DNA from: Octopus sinensis
Lineage: Eukaryota
Length of the DNA stretch: 64,000 nucleotides
Reading direction: 5' to 3'
NCBI RefSeq assembly: GCF_006345805.1
Contig: NC_043023.1
Span: 15,190,001 to 15,254,000, forward strand
A program made the translations under genes and the position numbers. The notes below the pieces were generated by a model, which was not told the DNA's origin, searched no databases, and worked only from the letters and a program-made list of their open reading frames with translations. Of this stretch, positions 3,020-59,879 are shown one piece after another. The first letter of the stretch is position 1, and every line of letters begins with the position of its first letter.

Positions 3020-3578
3020 TGTTTTGCAAGATTTTTTATGTGAAGTCGTGTGTTGAAACAGATATTGTTATATTTCGGAATGGTCATTTTGCCAGTTCAG
3101 CCAATAAAAACACACGCACTATATATTTGGTGTTATTTTGCTTCGGTGTTATTTATTTTTTACATTAATCTTAATTTTATTTCGGCCAGAGTTCTTTCTT
3201 CACACTCCTGTGACCTCATCAGTGGTCCTTTGCTTTCTTATTTGTGTGTTATTTATTGGCTAAACTGGCAAAATGACCATTCCTAAATAAAACAATATAT
3301 ATATATTTATGTTTTGCAAGATTTTTGATGTGAAATCGTGTGTTGAAACAGATATTGTTGTATTTCGGAATGGTCATTTTGCCAGTTTAGCCAATAAAAA
3401 TACACACACTATATATTTCGTGTTACTTTGCTTCAGTGTTATTTATTTTTTACATTAATCTTAATCTTATTTTGGCTGAAATATTTCAGCCAAAATAAGA
3501 TTAAGCTTAATGTAAAAAATAATTAACACTGAAGCAAAGTAACACCAAATATATAGTGCGTGTGTTTTTATTGGCTAA
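3020..3578. repeat. ~280-bp tandem duplication ending in a spacerless palindrome
   Basis: 3020-3290 repeated at 3300-3480; gctgaaat|atttcagc centred at 3482/3483 with ~95-bp arms. Confidence 0.75.
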
Positions 3579-4292
3579 CCCTTTCGTTACTGTATTTATT
3601 TTGAGATGCTCTGTGTTTCTTTCAATTACTTTAAATATAACAAAGAATTTAGTAAAATATCTTAGTTATCATTAAGCTAGTGTTAGGAACATAAATTGTG
3701 ACTAAGGTTTGGTGGAAGATTTTTATTAAAAACTTATGAAAACAAGACATTTGTACTCAGAGCCAGAACCGGTTTCAACCGAGTTGGTAATGAAAGGGTT
3801 AAGAATTGTTTCTCTTATATATTTTATCCCTTTCGTTACTGTATTTATTTTGAGATTCTCTTTATTTCTTTCAATTACTTTAAATATAACAAAGAATTTA
3901 GTAAAATAACTTAGTTATCATTCAGCTAGTGTTAGGAACATAAATTGTGACTAAGGTTTGGTGGAAGATTTTAATTAAAAACTTATGAAAACAAGACATT
4001 TGTACTACAGATTCAGAGGCAGTTTCAGCCGGGTTGGTATCAAAAGGGTAAAAATATCATGGTGACTTTAAGCCTTTTGTTACCATATTTCTGTTGAGAT
4101 GCTCTGTGTTCCTTTCACTTAATTTTAAATATAACAAAGAATTTACTCAAATAACTTAGTTATTATTAAGCTAGTGTTAGGGACATAAATTGTAACTAAG
4201 GTTTGGTGGAAGATTTTAATTCAAAACATATGAAAACAAGACATTTGTACTCAGAGCCAGAGCCGGTTTCAGCCGGGCTGGTATCGAAAGGG
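3579..4292. mobile_element. Three adjacent piggyBac-like MITEs (~220 bp each)
   Basis: CCCTTT...AAAGGG ends at TTAA-like sites (3579-3798, 3828-4048, 4072-4292); further copies at 32428-32641 and 47959-48178. Confidence 0.7.
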
Positions 4293-4616
4293 TTAAACTG
4301 GCAAAATGACCATTCCTAAATACAATATCACCAAATTATATAGCTTCAAAATAAACGTTTATTGCAGGTTGGTTTGAAGAATTGTGTAACTTTTATCATA
4401 CATTGATCCACTGTGTGAATTCTATAAATTATGTGTCACCATTACATCTTCTGGTTGAATGTCCCACATATAAAATGGTAAGAGAAAAAGAGTAAGACAA
4501 CTTTATTTTTGTTTCTGTTTATTAAATTAATTCACGGTGATTAAATTAATATCACAGTGATAAGGTTTCTCTCCTGTGTGAATATTTTTGTGAGGGGCAA
4601 GGTAACTTCTTCGAAA

Positions 4617-5071: not shown

Positions 5072-6367
5072 CTATCCAGAATGAATGTTTTTGTGATATT
5101 TAAGTTTATTGTTTTGAGAGAATAATCGACCACAAATTTCACATTCAAATCGTTTCTCTCCTGTATGAGTGTATTTGTGAGTAGTAAGACCAGTCTTCTG
5201 AGAGAACAACTTTCCACAGACGTCACAGAGATAAGGTTTCTCATTTGTATGAATGTATTTGTGTGTCGTTAAGTTACCTAAGTGAATGAATGCTTTACCG
5301 CATATATCACAGTGATATGGCATCTCTCCTGAATGAATGTATTTATGAGAATTGAGGCTGCTTCTATGAGTGAAGAATTCACCACAAATATGACACTGAT
5401 ATGGTTTATCACCTGTATGTATGGATTTGTGATCTGCAAGGCCACTCTTTTGTGAGAATGATTTACCACAAATATCACATTCATATGGTTTCTCTCCTGT
5501 GTGAATTGACATATGATAAGTGAGGCCTCTCATTTGCGGGAAGGATTTACCACAAAAGTCACAATTGTATGGTTTCACTCCTGCGTGAACGGATTTGTGG
5601 TAAATAAGCCCACTCTTTTGAAAGAATGATTTACCACAGATATCGCAATGATGTGTCTTTTCATGAGTATGAAGAAGTTTGTGCGTAGCTAAAGTACTTG
5701 ATTGTGAAAAGGATTTACCACAGATGTCGCAGTGATGTGGTCTCTCTCCAGTATGAATGTATTCGTGACAAGCAAGGTGGCTTTTTCGAGAGAATGATCT
5801 ACCACAAATATCACATTGATATGGATGTTCTCCTGTATGACTGTATTTGTGAGATGTAAGCTGAATCTTCTGAACAAATGATTTCCCACAGGTATCACAC
5901 TGATACGGTTTCTCTCCTAAATGGATATGTTTGTGAGAGGTAAGGTTACATTTTTGAGAGAACGATTTACCACAGATATCGCAGTCATATGGTTTCTCAC
6001 CTGTATGAGTGCGTTTGTGATTAGCTAAGTTACCTCTGGAAGAGAATGATTTACCACAGACATCACAGCGATATCCTTTCTCTCCTGTATGAATATACTT
6101 GTGAGAAATAAGGCTATCGTTTTCAGAGAATGATTCACCACAGACATCACAGCGATATCCTTTCTCTCCTGTATGAATATACTTGTGAGAAATAAGGCTG
6201 TCGTTTTCAGAGAATGATTCACCACAGACATCACAGTGATATTCCTTTCCATCTGAATGAATACATTCGTGAACAGTAAGAGTTTCCTGATTAGAGAAAG
6301 ACATTTTACAGATATCACATTGGTATGATGAATCTTCACTTTCTTCTGTCATCTCTTGAGGATCCAT
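5072..6367 (-). CDS. C2H2 zinc-finger protein ZNF-a, 15 tandem fingers, 431 aa
   Basis: First ATG at 6367 (the listed ORF starts at a TTG); 14 aa plus 15 x C-x2-C-x12-H-x3-H with TGEKP-type linkers; acceptor ...tgtgtcatttcag at 6608. Confidence 0.9.
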   Translation of the reverse strand: MDPQEMTEESEDSSYQCDICKMSFSNQETLTVHECIHSDGKEYHCDVCGESFSENDSLISHKYIHTGEKGYRCDVCGESFSENDSLISHKYIHTGEKGYRCDVCGKSFSSRGNLANHKRTHTGEKPYDCDICGKSFSQKCNLTSHKHIHLGEKPYQCDTCGKSFVQKIQLTSHKYSHTGEHPYQCDICGRSFSRKSHLACHEYIHTGERPHHCDICGKSFSQSSTLATHKLLHTHEKTHHCDICGKSFFQKSGLIYHKSVHAGVKPYNCDFCGKSFPQMRGLTYHMSIHTGEKPYECDICGKSFSQKSGLADHKSIHTGDKPYQCHICGEFFTHRSSLNSHKYIHSGEMPYHCDICGKAFIHLGNLTTHKYIHTNEKPYLCDVCGKLFSQKTGLTTHKYTHTGEKRFECEICGRLFSQNNKLKYHKNIHSG

Positions 6368-6849
6368 TTTTTGTTCTATATTATACAAGCAGAAAACATA
6401 TATTTGCTTTGTTATTTATATAATTCTCTGTAGATTCAAATACTTCTGCTACATTTCCAGCAGTTCTGGTCTTCAATATCTGAAGATGATGTAAACATCT
6501 TTGCAGATTTTTCCATCTTCAAACAGAATGGGAAATCTTCAAGTGATAATCAATATTGATGATGTATCTGATGTAAAAACTCCTTTATACCACAAACATT
6601 TCACCTCCTGAAATGACACAGAAACAGAAGAAGATATAGGAAAGACTTAAAAAGCAGAGATTCAACAATAGAAAATATAACTACATTTTCATAATGATAA
6701 ACTGTGGATATAATCCTTTAGGTCGTCTTTGAAATATATTTTGATATTAAAATTATATGATACAACCTTGTGTAATGTCTACATATACACGGACTTCAGC
6801 TCCTCTTCTTTCAGATATTATGTAAAACGTTGAACTACAGAATATTGGA

Positions 6850-10539: not shown

Positions 10540-11255
10540 TCTCTTTTACTTGTTTCAGTCATTTGACCGCAGCCATGCTGGAGCACCGCCTTTAGTCGAG
10601 CAACTCGACCCCGGGACTTATTTTGTAAGCCCAGTACTTATTCTATCGGTCTATTTTTGCCGAACCGCTAAGTACCAGGGACGTAAACACACCAGCATCA
10701 GTTGTCAAGCAATGCTAGGGGGACATACACAGACACACAAACACACACACATATATATATATATATACATATATACGACGGGCTTCTTTTCAGTTTCCGT
10801 CTACCAAATCCCTTCACAAGGCTTTGGTCGGCCCGAGGCTATAGTAGAAGACACTTGCCCATGGTGCCACGCAGTGGGACTGAACCCAGAACTATGTGGT
10901 TGGTAAGCAAGCTACTTACCACACAGCAACTCGACCCCGGGACTTATTCTTTTGTAAACCCAGTACTTATTCTATCGGTCTCTTTTGCCGAACCGCTAAG
11001 TAACGGGGACGTAAACACACCAGCATCAGTTGTCAAGCAATGATAGGGACAAACACAGACACACACACAACACACGCATATATATACTATACATATATAC
11101 GACGGGCTTCTTTCAGTTCCGTCTACCAAATCCACTCACAAGGCTTTGGTCGGCCCGAGGCTATAGTAGAAGACACTTGCCCAAGGTGCCACGCAGTGGG
11201 ACTGAACCCGGGACCATGTGGTTGGTAGACAAGCTACTTACCACACAGCTACTCC
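10540..11255 (-). mobile_element. Two tandem SINE family A copies
   Basis: 10540-10925 and 10926-11255 share the family A consensus. Confidence 0.8.
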
Positions 11256-13865: not shown

Positions 13866-14067
13866 AGTCTGTGCTGGCCCCCCCCCCCAACATCGCTTGA
13901 CAACCGATGCTGGTGTGTTTACGTCCCTGTAACTTAGCGGTTCGGCAGAAGAGACCGATAGAATAAGTACTAGGCTTACAAAGAATAAGTCCTGAGGTCG
14001 ATTTGCTAGACTAAAAAGGCGGTGCTCCAGCATGGCCGCAGTTAAATGACTGAAACAAGTAAAAGAG
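13662..14067 (+). mobile_element. SINE family A
   Basis: Family consensus with (TA)n. Confidence 0.85.
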
Positions 14068-14869: not shown

Positions 14870-15258
14870 TATATTTCTTTATTGCCCACAAGGGGCTAAA
14901 CAAGGACAGACAAAGGGATTAAGTCGATTACATCGACCCCAGTGCGTAACTAGTACTTAATTTATTGACCCCGAAAGGATGAAAGGGAAAGTCGACCTCG
15001 GCAGAATTTGAACTCAGAACGTAACGGCAGACGAAATACCTATTTCTTTATTGCCCACAAGGGGCTAAACGCAGAGGGGACAAACGGATTAAGTCGATTA
15101 TATCGACCCCAGTGCGTAACTGGTACTTATTTATTCGACCCCGAAAGGATGAAAGGCAAAGTCAACCTTGGCGGAATTTGAACTCAGAACGTAACGGCGG
15201 ACGAAATACCACTAGGCATTTCGTCCGACGTGGTAACGTTTCTGCCAGCTCGCCGCCT
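14870..15258 (-). mobile_element. SINE family B, one head plus two tandem bodies
   Basis: Junction gacgaaatac|ctatttc at ~15040. Confidence 0.75.
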
Positions 15259-15747: not shown

Positions 15748-16154
15748 AAAATAAATATGACGTTAGAAGAATGTTCAGACACAAGGATGATAAATACCAG
15801 TTTGTAGTCAAGGTACACGATAGTTGAAATGCTGTATCAAGAAGTTGTGGTCCAGAGCTCGCATTTGGAGCTGTTAACACTAAGACCTCTACAACCCATC
15901 CTTTACCTCTGACAATATCAGAAGGGCAATTGCCTCTTTTCCAGCGGGTTCTGGTGCAGGGATCAATAGCTTATTACCTCAGCATCTGGTAACTGGTATT
16001 TAATTTATCGACTGGTAACTGGTATTTAATTTATCGACCCCGAAAGGATGAAAGGCAAAGTCGACCTCGGCGGAATTTGAACTCACAACGTAACGGCAGA
16101 CGAATACGGCTACGCATTTCGCCCGCTGTGCTAACGTTTCTGCCAGTTCTCCGC

Positions 16155-16991
16155 CTGTTGGATTCCAGAGGCAGACATGATGAGGTGATCACCAAATGTA
16201 AGATAGGAGGACTCCCAGTAGGATTGCCAAGCAGAGTGATAAAGTGGTGGGGAATTCTCCCTTACTGTGTGTGGAAGATGACATCTCGATTGACGGAGTT
16301 AAAAGTATTCTTAAGGTCAAGTTTGAGGATGACCTTTGGGAACTCAAAGAGCAAATTGGTGAACGACCTGATGGTATGAGCAGCCGCTGCACAACCTAGG
16401 TTCGTACACACTCCTATCTGATATAATCGACTTAATCCGTTTGTCTGTCCTTGTTTGTCCTCTCTGTGTTTAGCCCCTTGTGGGTAGTAAAGAAATAGGA
16501 ATAACTATAAAAATGAATCTTTTGAATTTAACTAAATTCTATATTTTTATGCAGCTGAAGATTGCTCTACATTTTAAAAGTGATGTAATATTTGCATTGT
16601 TCAATTAAATGGAGTCGCATGAAACGATCGTACTGCATTACCTCTGGATATCCTTGTTGCTTATTTTGATTGTAATCACCCCATTTTGAATTATATGGAT
16701 AATACCATACTAAATTCTGGTGCCTTTAACTTAAGTACCACATTCAACTGAATCTAAATTTTCACTGAACTTATACTCTTTTACTTCTTTCAGTCATTTG
16801 ACTGTGGCCATGCTGGAGCACCGCCTTTAGTCGAGCAAATTGACCCTAGGACTTATTCTTTGTAAGCCTAGTACTTATTCTATCGGTTTCTTTTGCCGAA
16901 CCGCTAAGTTACAGAGACGTAAACACACCAGCATCGGTTGTCAGGTGATGATGGTGGGACAAACACAGACACACAAACATACACACACACA

Positions 16992-17048
<57 letters not shown>

Positions 17049-17272
17049 AAAGAGCAAAATGGTGAAAGACCTGATGGTCTGAGGCAGCAGCCGCACAGCC
17101 TAGGTTTGTACACACTCCTAGCTGAATAGGGGAAAATTCATCGGCCAGTGATCCAACACAGAATACAACCAATTTCTATGGGGTGGAGGTCACCATTGGG
17201 CTTGGTGAGATCAAATAGTTTGGCCCAAAGAACAGGGGACGAATGTAGGCGAGGACACTCTCGGATGAGAAC
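16155..17272 (-). mobile_element. CRE-clade reverse transcriptase fragments, interrupted by SINE pieces
   Basis: RPLFFG/AKLFDLTKPNGDLHPIEIG, FSPIQLGVCTNLGCAAAA, ILKLDLKNTFNSVNR, WQSY..SYLTFGDHLIMSASGIQQ; these match the CRE RT motifs FFGA.L..L.K..GG.RPI.VG, QLGVG...G.EA, KLDF.NAFN, S..GVQQGDP. Confidence 0.8.
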
Positions 17273-20200
17273 AAGTTTATAAAATGTGTTAGGGGCTCCA
17301 AGAGTTCGAGTCCAGCATCACCGGCTAACAGGGAGACACCATCCTTGAGATGCTGAGGTAATAAGCCATTGATCCCTGCACCAGAACCCGCTGGAAAAGA
17401 GGCAATTGCCCTTCTGATATTGTCAGAGGTAAAGGATGGGAAGTTTATGAAATGTGTTAGGGGCTCCAAGAGTTCGAGTCCAGCATCACTGGCTAACAGG
17501 GAGACACCATCCTTGAGATGCTGAGGTCATAAGCCATTGATCCCTGCACCAGAACCCGCTGGAAAAGAGGCAATTGCCCTTCTGATATTGTCAGAGGTAA
17601 AGGATGGGAAGTTTATGAAATGTGTTAGGGGCTCCAAGAGTTCGAGTCCAGCATCACTGGCTAACAGGGAGACACCATCCTTGAGATGCTGAGGTCATAA
17701 GCCATTGATCCCTGCACAAGAACTTGCTGGAAAAGAGGCAATTGCCCTTCTGATATTGTCAGAGGTAAAGGATGGGAAGTTTATGAAATGTGTTAGGGGC
17801 TCCAAGAGTTCGAGTCCAGCATCACTGGCTAACAGGGAGACACCATCCTTGAGATGCTGAGGTCATAAGCCATTGATCCCTGCACCAGAACCCGCTGGAA
17901 AAGAGGCAATTGCCCTTCTGATATTGTCAGAGATAAAGGATGGGAAGTTTATGAAATGTGTTAGGGGCTCCAAGAGTTCGAGTCCAGCATCACTGGCTAA
18001 CAGGGAGACACCATCCTTGAGATGCTGAGGTCATAAGCCATTGATCCCTGCACCAGAACTCGCTGGAAAAGAGGCAATTGCCCTTCTGATATTGTCAGAG
18101 GTAAAGGATGGGAAGTTTATGAAATGTGTTAGGGGCTCCAAGAGTTCGAGTCCAGCATCACTGGCTAACAGGGAGACACCATCCTTGAGATGCTGAGGTC
18201 ATAAGCCATTGATCCCTGCACCAGAACCCGCTGGAAAAGAGGCAATTGCCCTTCTGATATTGTCAGAGGTAAAGGATGGGAAGTTTATGAAATGTGTTAG
18301 GGCTCCAAGAGTTCGAGTCCAGCATCACCGGCTAACAGGGAGACACCATCCTTGAGATGCTGAGGTAATAAGCCATTGATCCCTGCACCAGAACCTGCTG
18401 GAAAAGAGGCAGTTGCCCTTCTGATATTGTCAGAGGTAAAGGATGGGAAGTTTATGAAATGTGTTAGGGGCTCCAAGAGTTCAAGTCCAGCATCACCGGC
18501 TAACAGGGAGACACCATCCTTGAGATGCTGAGGTAATAAGCCATTGATCCCTGCACCAGAACCTGCTGGAAAAGAGGCAATTGCCCTTCTGATATTGTCA
18601 GAGGTAAAGGATGGGAAGTTTATGAAATGTGTTAGGGGCTCCAAGAGTTCGAGTCCAGCATCACTGGCTAACAGGGAGACACCATCCTTGAGATGCTGAG
18701 GTCATAAGCCATTGATCCCTGCACCAGAACCCGCTGGAAAAGAGGCAATTGCCCTTCTGATATTGTCAGAGGTAAAGGATGGGAAATTTATGAAATGTGT
18801 TAGGGGCTCCAAGAGTTCGAGTCCAGCATCACTGGCTAACAGGGAGACACCATCCTTGAGATGCTGAGGTCATAAGCCATTGATCCCTGCACCAGAACTC
18901 GCTGGAAAAGAGGCAATTGCCCTTCTGATATTGTCAGAGGTAAAGGATGGGAAGTTTATGAAATGTGTTAGGGGCTCCAAGAGTTCGAGTCCAGCATCAC
19001 TGGCTAACAGGGAGACACCATCCTTGAGATGCTGAGGTCATAAGCCATTGATCCCTGCACCAGAACCCGCTGGAAAAGAGGCAATTGCCCTTCTGATATT
19101 GTCAGAGATAAAGGATGGGAAGTTTATGAAATGTGTTAGGGGCTCCAAGAGTTCGAGTCCAGCATCACTGGCTAACAGGGAGACACCATCCTTGAGATGC
19201 TGAGGTCATAAGCCATTGATCCCTGCACCAGAACTCGCTGGAAAAGAGGCAATTGCCCTTCTGATATTGTCAGAGGTAAAGGATGGGAAGTTTATGAAAT
19301 GTGTTAGGGGCTCCAAGAGTTCGAGTCCAGCATCACTGGCTAACAGGGAGACACCATCCTTGAGATGCTGAGGTCATAAGCCATTGATCCCTGCACCAGA
19401 ACCCGCTGGAAAAGAGGCAATTGCCCTTCTGATATTGTCAGAGGTAAAGGATGGGAAGTTTATGAAATGTGTTAGGGGCTCCAAGAGTTCGAGTCCAGCA
19501 TCACCGGCTAACAGGGAGACACCATCCTTGAGATGCTGAGGTAATAAGCCATTGATCCCTGCACCAGAACCTGCTGGAAAAGAGGCAGTTGCCCTTCTGA
19601 TATTGTCAGAGGTAAAGGATGGGAAGTTTATGAAATGTGTTAGGGGCTCCAAGAGTTCAAGTCCAGCATCACCGGCTAACAGGGAGACACCATCCTTGAG
19701 ATGCTGAGGTAATAAGCCATTGATCCCTGCACCAGAACCTGCTGGAAAAGAGGCAATTGCCCTTCTGATATTGTCAGAGGTAAAGGATGGGAAGTTTATG
19801 AAATGTGTTAGGGGCTCCAAGAGTTCGAGTCCAGCATCACTGGCTAACAGGGAGACACCATCCTTGAGATGCTGAGGTCATAAGCCATTGATCCCTGCAC
19901 CAGAACCCGCTGGAAAAGAGGCAATTGCCCTTCTGATATTGTCAGAGGTAAAGGATGGGAAATTTATGAAATGTGTTAGGGGCTCCAAGAGTTCGAGTCC
20001 AGCATCACTGGCTAACAGGGAGACACCATCCTTGAGATGCTGAGGTCATAAGCCATTGATCCCTGCACCAGAACTCGCTGGAAAAGAGGCAATTGCCCTT
20101 CTGATTTTGTCAGAGGTAAAGGATGGGAAGTTTATGAAATGTGTTAGGGGCTCCAAGAGTTCGAGTCCAGCATCACTGGCTAACAGGGAGACACCATCCT

Positions 20201-20463
20201 TGAGATGCTGAGGTCATAAGCCATTGATCCCTGCACCAGAACCCGCTGGAAAAGAGGCAATTGCCCTTCTGATATTGTCAGAGGTAAAGGATGGGAAGTT
20301 TATGAAATGTGTTAGGGGCTCCAAGAGTTCGAGTCCAGCATCACCGGCTAACAGGGAGACACCATCCTTGAGATGCTGAGGTAATAAGCCATTGATCCCT
20401 GCACCAGAACCCGCTGGAAAAGAGGCAATTGCCCTTCTGATATTGTCAGAGGTAAAGGATGGG
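17273..20463 (-). repeat. Tandem array of 19 x 168-bp units derived from the CRE RT N-terminal region
   Basis: Marker aggggctcc at 17291 and every 168 bp to 20314 (one 167-bp unit); the unit encodes FTSDNIRRAIASFPAGSGAGINGLLPQHLKD...LLEPLTHFIN (56 codons). Confidence 0.97.
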
Positions 20464-20810
20464 TTGTAGAAAAACTTGATGGGTCAGGCAAGTGTGGGTG
20501 GTCATCTGGAGGGGGCCAGAAGATATTTCTCCTTCAGCTGATTGAGGGAGTCTGTGGTACAGGGGACAAGGGAGAACAGAGAAGAAAGAAGGCGAAAAGC
20601 CCCTTTAATGTCAGATTTGTTGAATTTGGCTTTAGCAGCCTCCTTTAAGTTATGTGGTTGACCGTTGTTCAGGGTTAGGTTGATGACCGAATTGAGATGA
20701 ACAATTCTTGGGATAGATTCGAACAGTTCCCCGAAACTGCCGTTTCGGGGAAGAAGTGAAGGATCCACTATTCTCATTCATCACGCGGAAGGGGACAAAA
20801 GTGAACAGGA
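20464..20810 (-). mobile_element. CRE element region immediately upstream of the RT
   Basis: ORF 20502-20777 contains AKFNKSDIKGAFRLLSS...DSLNQLKEKY, resembling the CRE pre-RT motif G.vkGAvR.L.S...L..KHP. Confidence 0.65.
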
Positions 20811-20847
20811 ACAGTTTCTGCCATTCTTAGGTGTTGTTGGATAGGCA

Positions 20848-21034
20848 CCTTCTTTCCTCTCTCTTCTCCCTTGTCCCCTGTATCACAGACTCCCTCAATC
20901 AGCTGAATGAGAAATATCCTCTGGTCCTCTTCAGATGATCACCCACACTCGCCTGACTCATCAAGTTTTTCTACAACTAATCCTTTACCTCTGACAATAT
21001 CAGAAGGGCAATTGCCTCTTTTCCAGCGGGTTCT
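20848..21034 (+). repeat. Inverted, diverged copy of 20407-20592
   Basis: Reverse-complement match with scattered mismatches; a second inverted copy of part of the unit is at 15888-15987. Confidence 0.85.
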
Positions 21035-21295
21035 TCAGCAGTTTCAAGAGAACAAAGGCGAAACAATTCTGCAGACCCTCAGGGATCTGATCAAAGAGTT
21101 TAAGCTTGGACAAACACTGGAGCTGCTAGAATGAGAATATGCTTGAAAAAGTTCAGAGAACTTATACTGTTGTTGGTAGTGAAAGGCAGATTGTATGATG
21201 CCTGCATGTGAAAAGCCATGCTACATGGCAGTGAAACATGGACTGTGACCTCAAAGGACATGTGAAAAACTAGAAAGAAATGAAGCTAGTATGCA

Positions 21296-22270
21296 ATTCT
21301 ACTAAATGGCTCAGAAACCTGGACGTTATCAAAGAAGCTTGAGAGGCGGTTGGATGGAACCTACACTCGCCTCCTTATGAGAGCTCAAAATCTATCGTGG
21401 AAGCGCCATCCAACCAAAATGCAAATATATGGGAAACTACCACCTGTGTCATCTCTTGTGAAAGGTAGGAGAGTTCAGTTTGCTGGACATTGTTGTAGAG
21501 CTGAAAAAGAGGTAATTTCTACTCTTCTCCCCTGGAAGCCATCTACTTGCAATACCAGAGGGTGCACACTCTCCTACCCTGATGTAATCTCCAGGGATAC
21601 AGGCATCCGGCAACAGGACCTCCGTAATGCCATGATGGACCGTGAAGTCTGGCGTAGCATGGTAAATTCCATTGTCTCGACCATGGTCGTGATATCAGAG
21701 GGTGCACACTCTCCTACCCTGATGTAATCTCCAGGGATACAGGCATCCGGCAACAGGACCTCCGTAATGCCATGATGAACCGTGAAGTCTGGCGTAGCAT
21801 TGTAAATTCCATTGTCCCCACCACGGTCACAATACCAGAGGGCGCACACTCTCCTACCCTGATGTAATCTCCAGGGATACAGGCATCCAGCAACAGGACC
21901 TCCATAATGCCATGATGGACCGTGAAGTCTGGCGTAGCATGGTAAATTCCATTGTCTTGACCATGGTCGTGATATCAGAGGGTGCACACTCTCCTACCCT
22001 GATGTAATCTCCAGGGATACAGGCATCCGGCAACAGGACCTCCGTAATGCTATGATGAACCATGAAGTCTGGTGTAGCATGGTAAATTCCATTGTCTCGA
22101 CCATGGTCGTGATATCAGAGGGCGCACACTCTCCTACCCTGATGTAATCTCCAGGGATACAGGCATCCAGCAACAGGACCTCCGTAATGCCATGATGGAC
22201 CGTGAAGTCTGGCGTAGCATTGAAAATTCCATTGTCTCGACCACAGTCGAACAATGATGATGATGATGAT
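21296..22270 (+). mobile_element. 5'-truncated RTEX-like LINE with (TGA)n tail
   Basis: LLNGSETWTL..LDGTYTRLL..NLSWK.HPT..IYG.LP.VS..RRVQFAGHC..W.P..YPDVISRDTG..MMDREVW. Confidence 0.7.
21556..22243 (+). repeat. Five tandem 140-bp copies of the RTEX 3' end
   Basis: cagagggtgcacactctcc starts at 21556, 21696, 21836, 21976 and 22116. Confidence 0.95.
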
Positions 22271-22632: not shown

Positions 22633-23523
22633 CCTATTTCTTTACTGCCCACAAGGGGTTAAACACAGAGAGGACAAACAAAGGGATTAAGTCGATTATA
22701 TCGACCCCCAGTGCGTAACTGGTACTTATTTAATCGACCCCGAAAGGATGAAAGACATAGTCGACTTCGTCCGAATTTGTGCTCAGAACATAGCGACAGG
22801 CGAAATACCTATTTCTTTACTACCCACAAGGGGCTAAACACAGAGGGGACAAACAAGGACAGGCAAAGGGATTAAGTCGATTATATCGACCCCAGTTGCG
22901 TAACTGGTACTTTAGTCGACCTGGGCGGAATTTGAACTCAGAACGTAGCGGCAGACAAAATACCTATTTCTTTACTACCCACAAGGGGTTAAACACAGAG
23001 AGGACAAACAAGGACAGGCAAAGGGATTAAGTCGATTATATCGACCCCAGTGTGTAACTGGTGCTTATTTAGCCGACCTCGGCGGAATTTGAACTCAGAA
23101 CGTAGCGGCAGACAAAATACCTATTTCTTTACTATCCACAAGGGGTTAAACACAGAGAGGACAAACAAGGACAGGCAAAGGGATTAAGTCGATTATATCG
23201 ATCCCAGTGCGTAACTGGTACTTATTTAATCGACTCCGAAAGGATGAAAGGCAAAGTCGACCTCGGCAGAATTTGAACTCAGAACGTAACGACAGACGAA
23301 ATACCTATTTTTTTACTACCCACAAGGGGCTAAACACAGAAAGGACAAAGGGATTAAGTCGATTACATCGACCCCAGTGCGTAACTGGTACTTATTTAAT
23401 CGACCCCGAAAGGATGAAAGTCAAAGTCGACCTCTGTGGAATTTGAACTCAGAACATAGCGACAGACGAAATACCGCTAAGAATTTCGCCCGGCGTGCTA
23501 ACGTTTCTGCCAGCTCGCCGCCT
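22633..23523 (-). mobile_element. SINE family B concatemer: one head, five bodies
   Basis: cctattt 3' ends at 22633, 22808, 22963, 23120 and 23304; head only at ~23470-23523. Confidence 0.8.
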
Positions 23524-24379: not shown

Positions 24380-24710
24380 ATTTGCGGATTCCGTGGACAG
24401 CGAGGCTCACCAATGGAGAAGTTCTTAAGCAGAAAAGTCCGAAAATGTCGCTAGAAGCTGGGATCACAAAGCATACATTGGCATATTTCGGTCATATTAT
24501 GCGGAGAAAATCCCTGGAGAAGGACATCATGCTCAGAATGGTCAGTGGCAAGAGAGGAAGAGGCCGACCAAGAACCCGCTGGCTTGACACCATCAAGAGT
24601 GATACCGGACTGGACATGGCCAATCTGAAAGAAGTGGCCCAGGATAGAACTGACTGGAGGACACTGATCCAACGAGTGACCGAGAGTCGATTTCGACTGA
24701 TCGGATAGAG
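24380..24710 (+). mobile_element. RTE LINE 3' end
   Basis: ORF 24382-24708; paralogous to 2160-2450 and 51935-52265. Confidence 0.85.
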
Positions 24711-25114: not shown

Positions 25115-26839
25115 CTATGGTTTCTCTCCTGTATGAATGTATTTGTGTCTATTAAAGTTACTTTTATGAGAGAATGATTTACCACAGATATCACAGGAAT
25201 ATGGTTTTTCTCCTGTATGAATGTATTTATGAGAGGTTAACTTGCTTTGATAAAAAAATGATTTACCACAAATGTCACAGGGATATGGCTTGTCTCCTGT
25301 ATGAGTGCGTTTGTGCACAGATAAACTACTTTTTCGGGAGAATGCTGTGCTACAGATATTACATTGATATGGTTGCTCTCCTGTGTGAATGTATTTATGA
25401 GAGGTTAAAGCGCTCAAACAAGGGAATGATTTACCACAAACATCACAGTGATGTGGTTTCTCCCCTGTATGAGTGTATTTGTGATAAGTAAGGCTACTTT
25501 TTTGAGAGAATGATTTACCACAAATGTCACAGGGATATAGTTTCTCTCCAGTATGAGTGTACGTATGATTACTAAGGTTACTTTTATGAGAGAACGTTTT
25601 ACCACAGATATCACACTGATATGGCTTCTCATTAGTATGAATAAGTTTGTGAGTTGTTAAATAACTTTTTAACGAAAAGGATTTACCACAAATATCACAT
25701 TGATATGGTTTCTCTCCAGTATGAATGGATTTATGATAAGCAAGGCCAGTCTTCCGAGAGAATGATTCACCACAAATATCACAGTGATATGGTTTCTCTC
25801 CTGTATGAATGGATCTATGATAAGCAAGGCCAGTCTTCCGAGAGAATGATTCACCACAAATATCACAGTGATATGGTTTCTCGCCAGTATGAATGGATTT
25901 GTGATACATAAGGGTACTGTTTTGGGAGAATGATTTACCACAAATATCACATTCATATGGTTTCTCTCCTGTGTGAGTGTATTTATGAGAAGTAAGACTA
26001 GTCTTCTGAGTGAATGACTTTCCACAGATATCACAGTAATAAGGTTTCTCTCTTGTATGAATGTATTTGTGTCTTGTTAAGCTACCTATCAGGCGGAATG
26101 ATTTATCACAGATATCACAGTGATGTGGTTTCTCTCCTAAGTGAATGTCTTTGTGAGAAAGAAGGCTACTTTTATGAGAGAATGATTTACCACAGACATC
26201 ACAGTGATATGAATTTTCTCCTGTATGAACATTTTTGTGGGAAGTCAGATGTATTTTCTGGGAGAATGACTTTCCACAGATATCACAGTGATAAGGTTTC
26301 TCTCCTGTATGAATGGATTTGTGTTTAGTTAAGTCACCTAACTGGGAGAATGATATACCACATATATCACAGGGATGTGGTTTCTCCCCTGTATGACTGA
26401 ATTTGTGGTAAGTGAGACTATTTGTTTGAGAGAATGATTTACCACAAATATCACAGCGATATGGTTTCTCTCCTGTATGAATGTATTTGTGAGAAGTAAG
26501 GTTAATTTTTTTAGAGAATGATTTACCACAAATACGACATTGATATGGTTTCTCACCTGTATGACTGTATTTGTGAGAAGTCAGGTGAACCTTCTGAAAG
26601 AATGACTTTCCACAAATATCACAGCGATACCGTTTCTCTCCTGTATGAATGTATTTGTGAGAGGTAAGGTTACTTTTCTGAGAGAATGATTTACCACAAA
26701 TATCACAATGATATTGTTTCCCCCCTGCATGAATGAATTTGTGAACAGTGAGATTTCCCTTATTAGAAAAAGTCTTTTTACAGATATCACATTGGTGTGA
26801 TAACTTTTTTCTTTCTTTTGTCATCTCTTGAGGATTCAT
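25115..26839 (-). CDS. C2H2 zinc-finger protein ZNF-b, 20 fingers, 574 aa
   Basis: ATG at 26839 (the listed ORF starts at a GTG); 14 + 20 x 28 aa; acceptor at 27204. Confidence 0.92.
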
Positions 26840-27454
26840 TATTGTTCTATAGTATACAAGCACAAAATATATTTTCCTGTTCTTCTTATATATTCCTTTG
26901 TTAATTCAAATACTTCTCTAGTTATATTTTCCACAAGTCTGGTCTTTGTCAATAGCTAAAGGTAATAGAAACACCTTTGCAGATTTTTCCAAGTTCAGAC
27001 TGAATGGGAAATTCCAGGCAATGATGGCAACAAATGTTGCTATTAATTCAGATGGAATTTTTCACAGTTCTTCACCATAGATAAATTATATAAACGTGGT
27101 TATATGTATTATTTATAACATCTTCCATTAGTCTTCAAGTGATGATCAATATTCATGATGTATCTGATGTAAAAACTCCTTTATACCACTAACATCTCAT
27201 ATTCTGAAATGACACAGAAACAGTAGAAGATATAGGAAAGACTTAAAAAGCAGAGATTCAACAATAGAAAATATAATTACATTTTCATAATCATAAACTG
27301 TGGATATAATCCTTTAAGTTGTCTTTGAAATATATTCTGTTATTAAAATCATATGATACAACCTTGTGTAATGTCTACATATACACAGACTTCAGCTCCT
27401 CTTCCTTCGGATATTATGTAAAACATTAAATTACATATTATTGGACAATATTTC

Positions 27455-30975: not shown

Positions 30976-31944
30976 CTATGGTTTCTCTCCTGTATGAATG
31001 TTTTTATGAGAGGTTAAAGAGCGCAAGCAAGACAATGATTTTCCACAAATATCACACTCATACAGTTTCTCTCCAGTATGAATGGATTTGTGTCTAGTTA
31101 AGTCACCTAACTGGGAGAATGATATACCACAAATATCACAGGGATGTGGTTTCTCCCCTGTATGACTGACTTTGTGATAAGTAAGGCTATGCTTATAGGA
31201 GAATGATTTACCACAAATATCACAGTGATATGGTTTCTCACCTGTATGGATGAATTTGTGATTAGTAAGGTGAATTTTTTGAGAGAATGATTTACCACAA
31301 ATATCACACTGATATGGTTTCTCACCTGTATGAATGGATTTGTGAGAATTAAGGTTACTTTTTTGAGAGAATGATTTATCACAAATATCACACTGATATG
31401 GATTCTCACCTGTGTGAATGTATTTGTGATAAGTAAGGCTACTCTTATGGGAGAATGATTTACCACAAATATGACATTGATATAGTTTCTCTCCTGTATG
31501 ACTGTATTTGTGTTTAGTTAAGTCACCTAACTGGAAGAATGATATACCACAAATCTCACACTGATGTGGTTTCTCCCCTGTATGAATGTATTTGTGATAA
31601 GTAAGGCTCTGCTTATGGGAGAATGATTTACCACAAATACGACATTCATATGGTTTCTCACCTGTATGAATGAATTTGTGAGTAGTTAAATTACATTTTA
31701 ATGAAAAAGATTTACCACAGATGTCACAGTGATAAGGTTTCTCTCCTGTATGAGTGGATTTGTGTCTAGTAAGGTGACTTTTATCAGAGAATGATTTACC
31801 ACAGACATCACAGTGATATGGCTTCCTACCTGCATGAATGAATTTGTGAACAGTGAGATTTCCCTTATTACAAAAAGTCTTTTTACAGATATCACATTGG
31901 TGTGATAATTTTTCTCTTTCTTTTGTCATCTCTTGAGGATTCAT
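30976..31944 (-). CDS. C2H2 zinc-finger protein ZNF-c, 11 fingers, 322 aa
   Basis: ATG at 31944; 14 + 11 x 28 aa; acceptor at 32270; no first-exon cassette found before the next gene. Confidence 0.88.
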   Translation of the reverse strand: MNPQEMTKEREKLSHQCDICKKTFCNKGNLTVHKFIHAGRKPYHCDVCGKSFSDKSHLTRHKSTHTGEKPYHCDICGKSFSLKCNLTTHKFIHTGEKPYECRICGKSFSHKQSLTYHKYIHTGEKPHQCEICGISFFQLGDLTKHKYSHTGEKLYQCHICGKSFSHKSSLTYHKYIHTGENPYQCDICDKSFSQKSNLNSHKSIHTGEKPYQCDICGKSFSQKIHLTNHKFIHTGEKPYHCDICGKSFSYKHSLTYHKVSHTGEKPHPCDICGISFSQLGDLTRHKSIHTGEKLYECDICGKSLSCLRSLTSHKNIHTGEKP

Positions 31945-33278
31945 TATTGTTCTATAGTATACAAGCACAAAATATAATTTTGCTTCCTTTCTTATATATT
32001 TCTATTGCTTATATTTCCAGCAGTTCTGATCTTCATCAATATCTGAAGATGATACAAACACCCTTGCAGATATCTCCCGCTCCAAACAGAATGTGAAATA
32101 CTTTAGCAAATATTCCAGGCAATGATGGAAACAAATGTTGCCATTAATTCAGAAGAAATATTTCAGTTTTCCACCATAGACAAATCGTATAAACAGAGTT
32201 ATGTCAAATATTTATAACATCTTCCATTAGATGATCAATATTCATGAAGTATCACTAACATTTCACCTCCTGAAATGACACAGAAACAGAAGAAGATATA
32301 GGAAAGACTTAAAAAGCAGAGATTCAACTATAAAAAAAATATAACTACATCTTCATAATGATAAACTGTGGATATAATCCTTTAATTTGTCTTTGAAATT
32401 TATTTATGGTAATTTATAATATGGTAACCCTTTTGTTACCATATTTCTGCTGAGATTCAGTGTGTTTCTTTCAATTATTTTAAATATAATAAAGAACTTA
32501 GTAAACTAACTTAGTTATTCAACTAGTGTTAGGAACATAAATTGTAACTAAGGTTCCGTGGAAGATTTTAATTCAAAACTTATGGAAAGACATTTTTCCA
32601 CAGAGCCAGAGCCGGTTTTGGCCGGGTTAGTAACAAAAGGGTGTGGTCTTTGAAATTTATTTTGTTATTAAAATTATATGATACAACCTTGTGTAATGTC
32701 TACATATACACGGACTTCAGTTCCTCTTCCTTCAGATATTATGTAAAACATTATCCCTTTAGTGTTCAGATTATTCTGTTAAATGTAATTCTTTTTCACT
32801 CAAATTGCTTTGAATTAATCATGCATTATCTTATAGCTTTCAGGTTTCAATGATGTGATTGTTTATTTCTAGAATGTCAATGTAGGTTAGGTGTGAGAGG
32901 CCAGATACCGCCAGTTTGAATATAAAACATGCAGAATATCTGGGCCTGATATGGCCGGTTTAAACAATAAAGGGTTCAACTATAGGATATTGGACAATAA
33001 TATGATAAGTGACTACTGTTTAACCCTAGGTTATCCCTGACTGAGCAGATCTATTATTAATGAAATTAGGTAATGTTCATGATTGTTACAACTTCTGTAA
33101 CAGATCAAACATAAACATAAACTACAATTTAGTGAACCAACCCATCATGACTTTTCCTCTCGTAACTTTATTAATAATAAAAACAAACTGCACTCACATA
33201 TGTTGAAGGTGTGGTCACTAATTTAGAGAAAGTGTTCTGTGAATTGACGCATGAAGAGGAGAGCCAGAACAGAATGGC

Positions 33279-46003: not shown

Positions 46004-47476
46004 CTAGGGTTTCTCTTCTGTATGAATGTGTTTGTGAGAATCAAGGTAACGTCTTTGAGAGAATGACATTCCGCAGACATCACATTGATGAGGTTTCTCT
46101 CCTGTATGAATGTATTTGTGTTTAGTAAGGCCTCTCTTCTGAGAGAATGATTTACCACAAATATCACAGTCATGTGGTTTCTCTTCTGTATGAATGGATG
46201 TGTGAGAAGAAAGGTGACTTTTTTGAGAGAATGATTTACCACAAATATCACATTCATATGGTTTCTCACCTGTATGAATGAATTTGTGAGTAGTTAAATT
46301 ACATTTTAATGAAAAAGATTTACCACAGATATCACAGGGATATGGTTTCTCTCCTGTATGAACGGATTTGTGATAAGTAAGGCTACTCATTTGAGAGAAT
46401 GATTTACCACAAATATCACACTGATATGGTTTCTCACCTGTATGAATGAATTTGTGAGTCGTTAAATTACGTTTTAATGAAAAAGATTTAACACAGATAT
46501 CACATTGATATGGTTTCTCTCCTGTATGAACGGATTTGTGATAAGTAAGGCCAGTCTTTTGAGAAAATGATTTACCACAAATATCACATTGATAAGGTTT
46601 CTCCCCTGTATGAATGTATTTGTGAGAAGTCAGGTGAATTTTCTGAGAGAATGATTTTCCACAGATATCACAGTGATAAGGTTTCTCTCCTGTATGAATG
46701 GATAAGTGATAAGTAAGGCTGTGCTTATGGGAGAATGATTTACCACAAATATCACATTGATAAGGTTTCTCTCCTGTATGAATGAATTTGTGAGAAGTCA
46801 GGTGAATTTTCTGAGAGAATGATTTTCCACATATATCACAGGGATGTGGTTTCTCCCCTGTATGACTGACTTTGTGATAAGTAAGGCTATGCTTAAAGGA
46901 GAATGATTTACCACAAATATCACAGTAATATGGTTTCTCACCTGTATGAATGGATTTGTGATTCGTAAGGTTACTTTTACCAGAGAATGATTTACCACAA
47001 ATATCACACTGATATGGTTTCTCTCCTGTATGAGTGGATTTGTGACAAGTAAGGCTAATCTTATGAGAGAATGATTTACCACAAATATCACACTGATAAG
47101 GTTTCTCTCCTGTATGAATGGATTTGTGTTGAGTAAGGCTACTTTTATGAGAGAATGATTTACCACAAATGTCACATTGATATGGTTTCTCACCTGTATG
47201 ACTGTATTTGTGAGAAGTAAGGTGAACCTTCTGAAAGAATGACTTTCCACAAATATCACAGTGATACCGTTTCGCTCTTGTATGAATGTAATTGTGTTTA
47301 GTAAGGTGACTTTTATCAGAGAATGATTTACCACAGACATCACAGTGATATGGCTTCCCCCCTGCATGAATGAATTTGTGAACAGTGAGATTTCTCTTAT
47401 TACAATAAGTCTTTTTACAGATATCACATCGGTATGATAACGTTTTTCTTTCTTTTGTCATCTCTTGAGGATTCAT
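46004..47476 (-). CDS. C2H2 zinc-finger protein ZNF-e, 17 fingers, 490 aa
   Basis: ATG at 47476; 14 + 17 x 28 aa; acceptor at 47804. Confidence 0.92.
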   Translation of the reverse strand: MNPQEMTKERKTLSYRCDICKKTYCNKRNLTVHKFIHAGGKPYHCDVCGKSFSDKSHLTKHNYIHTRAKRYHCDICGKSFFQKVHLTSHKYSHTGEKPYQCDICGKSFSHKSSLTQHKSIHTGEKPYQCDICGKSFSHKISLTCHKSTHTGEKPYQCDICGKSFSGKSNLTNHKSIHTGEKPYYCDICGKSFSFKHSLTYHKVSHTGEKPHPCDICGKSFSQKIHLTSHKFIHTGEKPYQCDICGKSFSHKHSLTYHLSIHTGEKPYHCDICGKSFSQKIHLTSHKYIHTGEKPYQCDICGKSFSQKTGLTYHKSVHTGEKPYQCDICVKSFSLKRNLTTHKFIHTGEKPYQCDICGKSFSQMSSLTYHKSVHTGEKPYPCDICGKSFSLKCNLTTHKFIHTGEKPYECDICGKSFSQKSHLSSHTSIHTEEKPHDCDICGKSFSQKRGLTKHKYIHTGEKPHQCDVCGMSFSQRRYLDSHKHIHTEEKP

Positions 47477-48999
47477 TATTGTTCTATAGTATACAAACAC
47501 AAAATATAATTTTGCTTCCTTTTTTATATATTTCTATTGCTGATATTCCCAGCAGTTATGATCTTCATCAATATCTGAAGATGATACAAACACCTTTGCA
47601 GATATCTCCCGCTCCAAACAGAATGTGAAATACTTTAGCAAATATTCCAGGCAATGATGGAAACAAATGTTGCCATCAATTCAGAAGATATATTTCACAG
47701 TTTTCCACCATAGACAAATCATATAAACAGAGTTATGTCAAATATTTATAACATCTTCCATTAGATGATCAATATTCATGAAGTATCACTAACATTTCAC
47801 CTCCTGAAATGACACAGAAACAGAAGATATAGGAAAAACTTAAAAAGCAGAGATTCAACTATAAAAAAAATATAACTACATCTTCATAAGGATAAACTGT
47901 GGATATAATCCTTTAATTTGTCTTTGAAATTTATTTATGGTAATTTATAATATGGTAACCCTTTTGTTACCATATTTCTGCTGAGATTCAGTGTGTTTCT
48001 TTCAATTATTTTAAATATAATAAAGAACTTAGTAAACTAACTTAGTTATCATTCAACTAGTGTTAGGAACATAAATTGTAACTAAGGTTTGGTGGAAGAC
48101 TTTAATTCAAAACTTATGAAAACAAGACATTTTACCACAGAGCCAGAGCCGGTTTTGGCCGGGTTAGTAACAAAAGGGTGTGGTCTTTGAAATTTATTTT
48201 GTTATTAAAATTATATGATACAACCTTGTGTAATGTCTACATATACACGGACTTCAGTTCCTCTTCCTTCAGATATTATGTAAAACATTATCCCTTTAGT
48301 GTTCAGATTATTCTGTTAAATGTAATTCTTTTTCACTCAAATTGTTTTGAATTAATCATGCATTATCTTATAGCTTTAAGGTTTCAATGATGTGATTGTT
48401 TATTTCTAGAATGTCAATGTAGGTTAGGTGTGAGAGGCCAGATACCGCCAGTTTGAATATAAAACATGCAGAATATCTGGGCCTGATATGGCCGGTTTAA
48501 ACAATAAAGGGTTCAACTATAGGATATTGGACAATAATATGATAAGTGACTACTGTTTAACCCTAGGTTATCCCTGACTGAGCAGATCTATTATTAATGA
48601 AATTAGGTAATGTTCATGATTGTTACAACTTCTGTAACAGATCAAACATAAACATAAACTACAATTTAGTGAACCAACCCATCATGACTTTTCCTCTCCT
48701 AACTTTATTAATAATAAAAACAAACTGCACTCACATATGTTGAAGGTGTGGTCACTAATTTAGAGAAAGTGTTCTGTGAATTGACGTATGAAGAGTAGAG
48801 CCAGGACAGAATGGCGATCCTTCGGTATAGGTACACACGTGACTTTGTTTACATTTCTGAAGATAACAGAAACCCTTTTCTCCCCCCCCCCACCATATAA
48901 AAAAACACTTTTTTGAAATGTATCCGGTACTTACGGAAGTACACCGGTACTTATACCGTAAGATCGCCTTTCTTTTTAAAATAAAGTAAATAAAACACA

Positions 49000-53876: not shown

Positions 53877-54762
53877 CTATGGTTTGTCCCCTGTATTAAT
53901 GCATTTGTGTCTATTTAAGTACCTCTTCTGAGAGAATGATTTACCACAGATATAGCACCGATATGGTTTCTCACCTGTATGAACTGATTTGTGAGAATCA
54001 AGGTAACTTTTTTGAGAGAATGATTTACCACAAATATTGCAGTGATGTGGTTTCTCTCCTGTGTGAATGTGTTTGTGAGAATCAAGGCTACTCATATAAC
54101 AGAATGATTTACCACAGATATCACAGTGATATGGTTTCTCTCTAGCATCAGTGTATTTGTGATGAGTGAGGCAATATTTCTGAGTGAATGATTTACCACA
54201 AATATCACATCGATATGGTTTCTCTCCTGTATGAATGGATTTGTGAGTAGTTAAATAACTTTTTAATGAAAAGGATTTATCACAGATATCACACTGATAC
54301 GGTTTCTCACCTGTATGAATGTATTTGTGAGAATTAAGGCTACTTTTTTGAGAGAATGATTTACCACAAACATCACACTGATGTGGTTTCTCTCCTGTAT
54401 GAATGTGTTTGTGAGAATCAAGGGAACTTCTATGCGAGAATGATTTACCGCAAATACAACATTGATTTGGTTTCTCTCCAGTATGAACGAATTTTTTGAT
54501 AAGAAAGGGCATTCCTTTGAGAGAATGATTTACCACAGATATCACACTGATATGGTTTCTCTCCAGTATGAGTGTATTTGTGATGAGTAAGGTGACTTTT
54601 TTGAGAGAATGATTTACCACAGATATCACAATGATATTGTTTCCCCCCTGCATGAATGAATTTGTGAACAGTGAGATTTCCCTTACTAGAATAAGTCTTT
54701 TTACAGATATCACATTGGTCTGATAACTTTTCTCTTTCTTTTAACATCTCCAGACTATTCAT
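53877..54762 (-). pseudogene. ZNF-f, inverted duplicate of ZNF-g, 10 fingers, +1 frameshift, splice acceptor lost
   Basis: ATG at 54762; extra A at ~54495; homology to the ZNF-g upstream region stops at 54948, short of the acceptor. Confidence 0.8.
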
Positions 54763-58658: not shown

Positions 58659-59879
58659 ATGAATAGTCTGGAGATGTTAAAAGAAAGAGAAAAGTTATCA
58701 GACCAATGTGATATCTGTAAAAAGACTTTTTCTAATAAGGGAAATCTCAATGTTCACAAATTCATTCATGCAGGGGGGAAACAATATCATTGTGATATCT
58801 GTGGTAAATCATTCTCTCAAAAAAGTCACCTTACTCATCACAAATACACTCATACTGGAGAGAAACCATATCAGTGTGATATTTGTGGTAAATCATTCTC
58901 TCAAAGGACTGTCCTTTCTTATCACAAATCTGTTCATAGTGGAGAGAAACCATATCACTGTGATATCTGTGGTAAATCATTCTCTACAAAATATAATATT
59001 ACTAAACACAAATACATTCATACAAGAGAGAAACCAAATCAATGTCGTATTTGCGGTAAATCATTCTCTCATAGAAGTTCCCTTGATTCTCACACACACA
59101 TTCATACAGGAGAGAAACCACATCAGTGTGATGTTTGTGGTAAATCATTCTCTCAAAAAAGTAGCCTTAATTCTCACAAATATATTCACACAGGTGAGAA
59201 ACCATATCAGTGTGATATCTGTGATAAATCCTTTTCATTAAAAAGTTATTTCACTACTCACAAATCCATTCATACAGGAGAGAAACCATATCGATGTGAT
59301 ATTTGTGGTAAATCATTCTCTCAAAAAAGTCACCTTTCTTCTCACAAATCCATTCATACAGGAGAGAAACCATATCGATGTGATATTTGTGGTAAATCAT
59401 TCACTCAGAAATATAGCCTCACTCATCACAAATACACTCATACTGGAGAGAAACCATATCAATGTGATATTTGTGGTAAATCATTCTCTCAAAAGACTGC
59501 CCTTTCTTATCACAAAGTCGTTCATACTGGAGAGAAACCATATCACTGTGATATCTGTGGTAAATCATTCCCTAAAAAATATAACCTTACTAAACACAAA
59601 TCCATTCATACAGGAGAGAAACCATATCACTGTGATATTTGTGGTAAATCATTCTGTTATACGAGTAGCCTTGATTCTCACAAACACATTCATACAGGAG
59701 AGAAACCACATCACTGCGATATTTGTGGTAAATCATTCTCTCAAAAAAGTTACCTTGATTCTCACAAATCAGTTCATACAGGTGAGAAACCATATCGGTG
59801 CTATATCTGTGGTAAATCATTCTCTCAGAAGAGGTACTTAAATAGACACAAATGCATTAATACAGGGGACAAACCATAG
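58659..59879 (+). CDS. C2H2 zinc-finger protein ZNF-g, 14 fingers (last one H>N), 406 aa
   Basis: Intact ATG ORF; 14 + 14 x 28 aa. Confidence 0.92.

Follow-up and report, generated by a model that had tools for sequence, protein, structure and literature searches.

The stretch of Octopus sinensis DNA analyzed here (the window, 64 kb) contains a 3.2-kb tandem array embedded in a copy of a retrotransposon, a segment of which it repeats head to tail. Tandem Repeats Finder (TRF) reports a period of 168 bp and 19.0 copies with 98% matches and 0% indels (score 6144), that is, monomers of constant length in head-to-tail order, as the definition of a tandem repeat derived from a transposable element (TE) requires. 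An anchor motif recurs at a spacing of 168 bp throughout, with the sole exception of one 167-bp interval, which reflects a G missing from a GGGG run in unit 7. At both edges the adjoining bases do not match the unit and no partial unit is present, so the array comprises exactly 19.00 units. A preliminary description of the same DNA had claimed exactly 19 units of 168 bp, each in frame over 56 codons. TRF and the unit alignment agree with this count, one unit of 167 bp aside, and the minus-strand translation of the unit likewise gives 56 codons, reading PSFTSDNIRRAIASFPAGSGAGINGL[*/L]PQHLKDGVSLLA[S/G]DAGLELLEPLTHFIN. Alignment of the 19 units shows variation in 12 columns and resolves 11 different sequences, with a mean pairwise identity of 98.2%; the consensus itself is shared by six units. 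Of the eleven substitution sites within the array, three are CpG transitions, and CpG is strongly depleted in the array, with an observed/expected ratio of 0.20 compared with 0.44 for its flanks and 0.61 for the window overall. A blastn search of the 64-kb window found no second array of the 168-bp unit, only two fragments of 100–194 bp. The coordinates of the array and associated features are collected in Table 1.

Table 1. Features of the array and of the element around it (positions in the window)
Feature	Position	Strand	Evidence and remarks
Tandem array, 19 units	17273..20463	-	TRF, unit table, distance matrix, translation
7-unit block, first copy (units 4-10)	17777..18951	-	Unit alignment, lag test; 1175 bp
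7-unit block, second copy (units 11-17)	18952..20127	-	Unit alignment, lag test; 1176 bp
5' element flank (...KGAFRLLSS...LNQLKEKY...)	20464..20838	-	tblastn (P0133 aa 164-336, P0002 aa 1-151); alignment
3' element flank (...LFSSESVLAYIRPLFFG...NGDLHPIEIGCIL...QLGVCTNLGCAAAA)	17049..17272	-	Translation, tblastn, alignment
SINE-like repeat with (ACAT)n(AT)n microsatellite	16422..17048	.	blastn, TRF; interrupts RT
Further RT fragment, same family (...KLDLKNTFNSVNRDV...)	16143..16423	-	tblastn (P0098 aa 353-443); translation
Fragment B, inverted older partial copy	20848..21041	+	92-93% identical; head-to-head with arrayed element
Fragment C, inverted 100-bp copy	15888..15987	+	99% identical to reverse complement of 20371-20470

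This TE-derived tandem repeat falls in the minisatellite size class and lacks coding capacity. It is extremely improbable that the repeat is functional and under selection, whether as a coding repeat or as a structured RNA, even though the unit length is divisible by three and open reading frames (ORFs) of up to 148 aa run through those units that carry TTA in place of a stop codon. An in-frame stop interrupts 13 of the 19 units, which rules out the unit as a coding repeat, and the variable sites show no sign of conservation. The unit belongs to no Pfam family, and no Rfam family was found between positions 14000 and 25000. Nor is there a matching protein on record: no array-like protein occurs among 1.8 billion representative proteins, a word-indexed search with the protein of the collapsed element returned one weak match (P0001) and no array-like proteins, and an exact protein look-up of two array ORFs gave no match.

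The retrotransposon origin of the unit is clear from its relatives. An exhaustive phmmer search of the 1.8 billion representative proteins with unit 1 and its downstream flank gave 596 matches at E <= 0.001, with a single matched stretch in each matched protein; the segment likewise occurs once in the top 150 related proteins. In the long matches (about 930–1010 aa), the matched stretch lies at roughly residues 180–360 and Pfam RVT_1 starts right after it, an arrangement found in P0032, P0034, P0098, P0107, and P0133. Judged by its position in these alignments, the unit is the N-terminal extension that directly precedes the RT fingers. Homology of the monomer to a TE is evident both from the phmmer and tblastn matches to RT-bearing proteins and from collinearity at the DNA level with related copies (L001, L002, and L006). 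The preliminary description had derived the unit from a retrotransposon RT; the retrotransposon part of that claim stands, but the segment precedes the Pfam RT domain and is not part of its catalytic core.

The identity of the parent element can be approached through the same relatives. Two of the five long relatives have an N-terminal PHD finger, and in Pfam none of the five has an APE endonuclease domain (Exo_endo_phos); the combination of an RT with no N-terminal APE endonuclease is thus read from full-length relatives only. Among PDB matches, the closest solved structures are R2 retrotransposon proteins. Moreover, P0098 and P0133 carry a C-terminal C..C...H...C motif followed by RPDG...WD.T, in a region that is absent from the window; read by eye, this would be a restriction-like endonuclease (RLE). 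The lack of an APE domain, the R2 structure matches, and the CCHC/RPDG motif together point to a parent that appears to be an RLE-type non-LTR retrotransposon of the R2/CRE group. The earlier label of CRE is plausible because the element seems to be of the RLE type. In a survey of mollusc transposons, CRE-type LINEs were found almost exclusively in cephalopods (PMC10294476). This distribution agrees with the appearance of the window, with its C2H2 zinc-finger cluster and with SINE-like repeats that look octopus-like.

The array lies where the segment belongs in the element. We collapsed the array to a sequence of upstream flank, one unit, and downstream flank, which aligns to a Logan contig (L001) with 72% identity over 659 bp and is gapless at both junctions. 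Two more distant copies (L002–L005 and L006–L007) are also collinear and contain the segment once each. In tblastn searches with ten related proteins, in each of which the segment is single, the segment maps to the units, the preceding residues map to the 5' flank, and the following residues map to the 3' flank. Because collinearity is gapless across both edges, the array grew where the segment already lay. The native flanks and growth in place that had been claimed earlier are therefore borne out by collinearity with three single-unit DNA copies and ten proteins.

The copy that hosts the array is, to judge from its sequence, dead and truncated, because its flanks contain stops and a frameshift, a SINE-like repeat splits its RT, and 13 of the 19 units contain TGA. 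The 5' flank, which has stop codons, is homologous to the stretch that, in the relatives, separates the N-terminal part from the RT, and the 3' flank, with a frameshift and one stop, is the start of the RT domain. On the 5' side, the element ends at about residue 164. On the other side, RT homology resumes beyond the SINE-like repeat and ends at about residue 443 of roughly 970; tblastn found no RT homology below position 16143. The SINE-like block is bracketed by a 77-bp direct duplication of RT sequence (QLGVCTNLGCAAAA; 16346–16421 and 17049–17125, 88% identical), which is either an unusually long and old target-site duplication or the product of two abutting element copies.

These observations bear on whether the array could instead be one locus of a dispersed satellite, or a member of a retrotransposon subfamily that carries an internal repeat and has been spread by transposition. 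TE-carried satellite-like arrays are reported to be common in molluscs (PMC7492417), and fragment C is a junction sequence that has been copied at least once. However, both flanks are the element's own adjacent sequence, the segment is present once in three related DNA copies and in the top 150 related proteins, and there is no other such array in the 64-kb window. Furthermore, the arrayed copy is truncated, stop-ridden, and interrupted, and so could not transpose in its present state. We therefore regard a dispersed origin as very improbable relative to growth in place.

The units fall into two types that preserve some of the history of the array. At the variable codon in GL?PQHL, TGA is found in 13 of the 19 units and TTA in units 1, 7, 8, 14, 15, and 19, and our unit table agrees with the split of 13 versus six given in the preliminary description. 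A second site, CTGG or CCGG, which that description does not mention, varies in perfect linkage with this codon: the six units with TTA have CCGG (type b), and the other 13, with TGA, have CTGG (type a). Relatives have Gly at the second site (AG[DN]), so type b is ancestral at this Gly codon and type a carries a CpG-to-TpG change. Both edge units are of type b, and fragment C also carries TTA. The relatives have R, Q, or W at the stop position, the codons being AGA in L001, CAG in L006, and TGG in L002; the family consensus GLRPQHL stated earlier is indeed seen in P0002, P0005, and P0024. An ancestral CGR codon is plausible at this position, and the suggestion that TGA arose from a deaminated CGA is possible. 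Conversely, because TTA is present in both edge units and in fragment C, TTA would be the older state in the arrayed copy. The two scenarios are one mutational step apart.

A second layer of structure is a duplication of seven units. Unit by unit, the differences between units 4–10 and units 11–17 number 0, 0, 0, 1, 0, 0, and 1, for a total of two in 1176 bp (0.17%). The mean distance between units is 1.0 at lag 7 versus 2.6–3.6 at all other lags from 1 to 12, and a permutation test with 100,000 shuffles of unit order gave p ~3e-5 for the best of lags 1–9. The claim that units 4–10 recur as units 11–17 thus agrees with a signal far beyond chance. It had been based on short diagnostic motifs, three of which are exactly as described: gagata (A at column 157) in units 4 and 11, gcagtt (G at column 133) in units 7 and 14, and ttcaag (A at column 36) in units 8 and 15. 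The other two need adjustment. The A at column 3 underlying ggaaatt, assigned to units 9 and 16, is present, but the motif straddles unit junctions (9/10 and 16/17), which shifts its phasing by one unit; the T at column 116 underlying actcgc is found in units 10 and 17 but also in units 3, 5, and 12. Owing to the base missing from unit 7, the first block is 1175 bp long rather than 1176 bp. Outside the blocks, units 1–3 and 18–19 follow the seven-unit period loosely, with 0–3 differences. We therefore conclude that a 12-unit array became one of 19 units by a single duplication of a seven-unit block.

Whether this constitutes a higher-order repeat (HOR), as the preliminary description put it, depends on how much structure the term implies. 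The seven-unit period is real, and the copies of the multimer (n = 2) are closer to each other than adjacent monomers are. However, many homogenized copies of the multimer were not found in the array, where the correspondence is limited to units 4–10 and 11–17, and one block present twice is a single segmental duplication rather than a homogenized HOR array. Primate alpha-satellite HORs, which are homogenized over hundreds to thousands of copies, similarly have a multimer period with copies closer than neighboring monomers, generated by unequal exchange, whereas the block described here has two copies.

Both the copy number and the seven-unit duplication are taken from the assembly alone, which raises the question of whether a shorter real repeat of ~12 units or fewer was over-expanded, the second block being a separately polished duplicate. 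Just two of the 1176 positions separate the blocks, one of them an A>T change and the other a homopolymer indel; the indel, a 1-bp change in a G homopolymer, is of a type typical of polishing errors and may be one, and the nearby inverted fragment C, at 99% identity, could reflect a chimeric read. Nevertheless, the eleven distinct unit sequences stand in a definite order, so a sizeable array must be real. In addition, the blocks are not identical, given the substitution in unit 17, and the flanks join cleanly to single-copy sequence of the element. An assembly artefact is thus unlikely to account for the array.

The two isolated fragments of the unit indicate that the locus has also undergone other changes. 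Fragment B consists of the upstream flank and the first ~65 bp of the unit. Together with positions 20399–20592, it forms a 194-nt inverted repeat that is 92% complementary and has a 255-nt spacer, and it ends at 21042, where the tail of a different LINE truncates it. Fragment C consists of 8 bp of upstream flank and the first 92 bp of unit 19, of the TTA type, and it sits beyond the opposite end of the array from its source junction. It stems either from a local rearrangement in the recent past or from a chimera in the assembly; thus, either more than simple unequal exchange occurred at the locus or the assembly is locally imperfect.

Fragments of TEs have often been duplicated in tandem in the window. 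The LINE that truncates fragment B is represented by a 5'-truncated tail at 21042–22270 (+), with a C-terminal ORF (...LNGSETWTL...FAGHCCRAEKE...DREVWRSMV) and a terminal (ATG)n; this tail looks RTE-like. Its last 140 bp have been amplified 4.9 times at 21552–22243, where units two or three apart are 95% identical and neighbors 93%. This is a second, independent array derived from TE coding sequence, 1.1 kb from the 168-bp array. Another LINE C-terminal tail ORF (...GRGRPRTRWLDTIKSDTGL...DRTDWRTLIQRV) lies at 24382–24708 (+) and shows distant similarity to the tail at 21350–21727 (23% identity, E = 1e-6); neither of the two LINE-tail ORFs belongs to a Pfam family. Short arrays of two to three copies are found at 14872–15210 (170 bp), 22758–23234 (157 bp), 10599–11254 (322 bp), and 3576–4297 (249 bp), of which at least the first three consist of SINE-like sequence. 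Long C2H2 zinc-finger ORFs with a periodicity of 84 bp also cluster in the window, on the minus strand at 5072–6388, 25115–26863, 30976–31968, 46004–47500, and 53877–54713 and on the plus strand at 58659–59879. Exact look-ups of the neighboring zinc-finger ORFs gave no match, and the homologs of a 582-aa zinc-finger ORF are mostly vertebrate zinc-finger proteins, none near-identical. We considered whether the 168-bp period could come from a zinc-finger repeat (2 x 84 bp) and rejected this, as the unit has no BLAST match to the zinc-finger arrays in the window.

The periods of 170, 168, 140, and 157 bp at 14872, 17273, 21552, and 22758, respectively, are clustered. One reading of this clustering is that dead TE fragments were amplified in tandem several times independently within 8.4 kb of the zinc-finger cluster, with units of roughly nucleosome size, and that the 168-bp array is the largest product, but we consider this very unlikely. 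If it were true, a local or chromatin-linked process would be turning TE debris into arrays, and the locus would be a founder of a future satellite.

The history that we favor, and consider probable, is that an internal 168-bp segment of a dead RLE-type copy was duplicated and expanded in place, followed by the seven-unit duplication. The founding step would have been a tandem duplication of the segment just N-terminal of the RT domain. The array would then have grown as units repeatedly exchanged out of register or slipped during replication, a mechanism that is established for tandem repeats in general. Two unit types would have arisen, with type b keeping the ancestral Gly codon with its CpG, as well as TTA, and type a losing the CpG and carrying TGA; type a would then have spread through the interior, leaving type b in the two edge units. 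In the latest event, one exchange offset by seven units (1176 bp) would have duplicated units 4–10 and extended the array from 12 to 19 units. The later growth of the array, the type b units at both ends, and the single duplication of 1176 bp are all consistent with out-of-register exchange or slippage. Neither edge of the array has microhomology that would explain the founding event. The order of events, from old to recent, is suggested by the series of divergences: 28% from the nearest related copy, 7–8% from fragment B, 1.8% on average between units, and 0.17% between blocks.

Several features of this locus have precedents. Satellite DNA is known to arise when a TE, or part of one, is amplified in tandem, and short dispersed arrays are the expected intermediates (PMC9659126). 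Satellites derived from LINE ORF2 include PROsat in Phodopus roborovskii and Pvc20 in the harbor seal, both from L1 ORF2, and the chicken HinfI/SCR1 satellite consists of the CR1 3'UTR and part of ORF2 (PMC9659126). As in these cases, the monomer described here is an internal ORF segment of a non-LTR element that was amplified head to tail after loss of coding capacity. However, PROsat, Pvc20, and HinfI/SCR1 are abundant, cytologically visible, and present at many loci, whereas our analysis shows one 3.2-kb locus that is still inside its parent element, and their parents are L1 or CR1 rather than an apparently RLE-type element. In plants, tandem repeats internal to Ogre retrotransposons of Lathyrus seed satellites (PMC7004042), and there too a short array inside a retroelement is the proposed starting stage. 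The Ogre repeats lie in non-coding parts of LTR elements and are carried by active copies, in contrast to a coding segment in a dead non-LTR copy. Short dispersed TE-associated arrays are also known from the Helentron-associated arrays of Crassostrea gigas (PMC7492417) and from Tetris in Drosophila virilis (PMC4079207). Such arrays are likewise short, linked to TEs, located in gene-containing regions, and viewed as intermediates between TEs and satellites, but they are spread by the DNA transposon itself, whereas the 168-bp array shows no evidence of spread. A literature search on cephalopod satellite DNA gave nothing specific.

Thus, the locus fits the definition of a TE-derived tandem repeat, with only a minimal higher-order form. 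The preliminary description went further and called it a satellite, a term that goes beyond what one 3.2-kb locus and two short fragments in 64 kb, with no array-like proteins, can support. In the strict sense, satellite DNA forms long arrays that are highly abundant in the genome and usually occupy several loci. The array could seed a satellite, although there is no sign of its having done so. It is a further, well-preserved case of a known process, with a parent that appears to be RLE-type, rather than a new phenomenon, and it leaves the accepted view of satellite origins unchanged. The locus also matters for annotation: repeat masking would mark the array as 19 separate pieces of a LINE, and gene prediction could yield spurious ORFs within it. 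The value of the locus is as a clean, datable case of how a transposon fragment begins to turn into a tandem array, with the parent sequence remaining on either side. At the Gly codon, where ancestry can be judged, its edge units are of the ancestral type, and the trace of one recent multi-unit duplication can be seen. Loci of this kind help to calibrate how tandem arrays grow.
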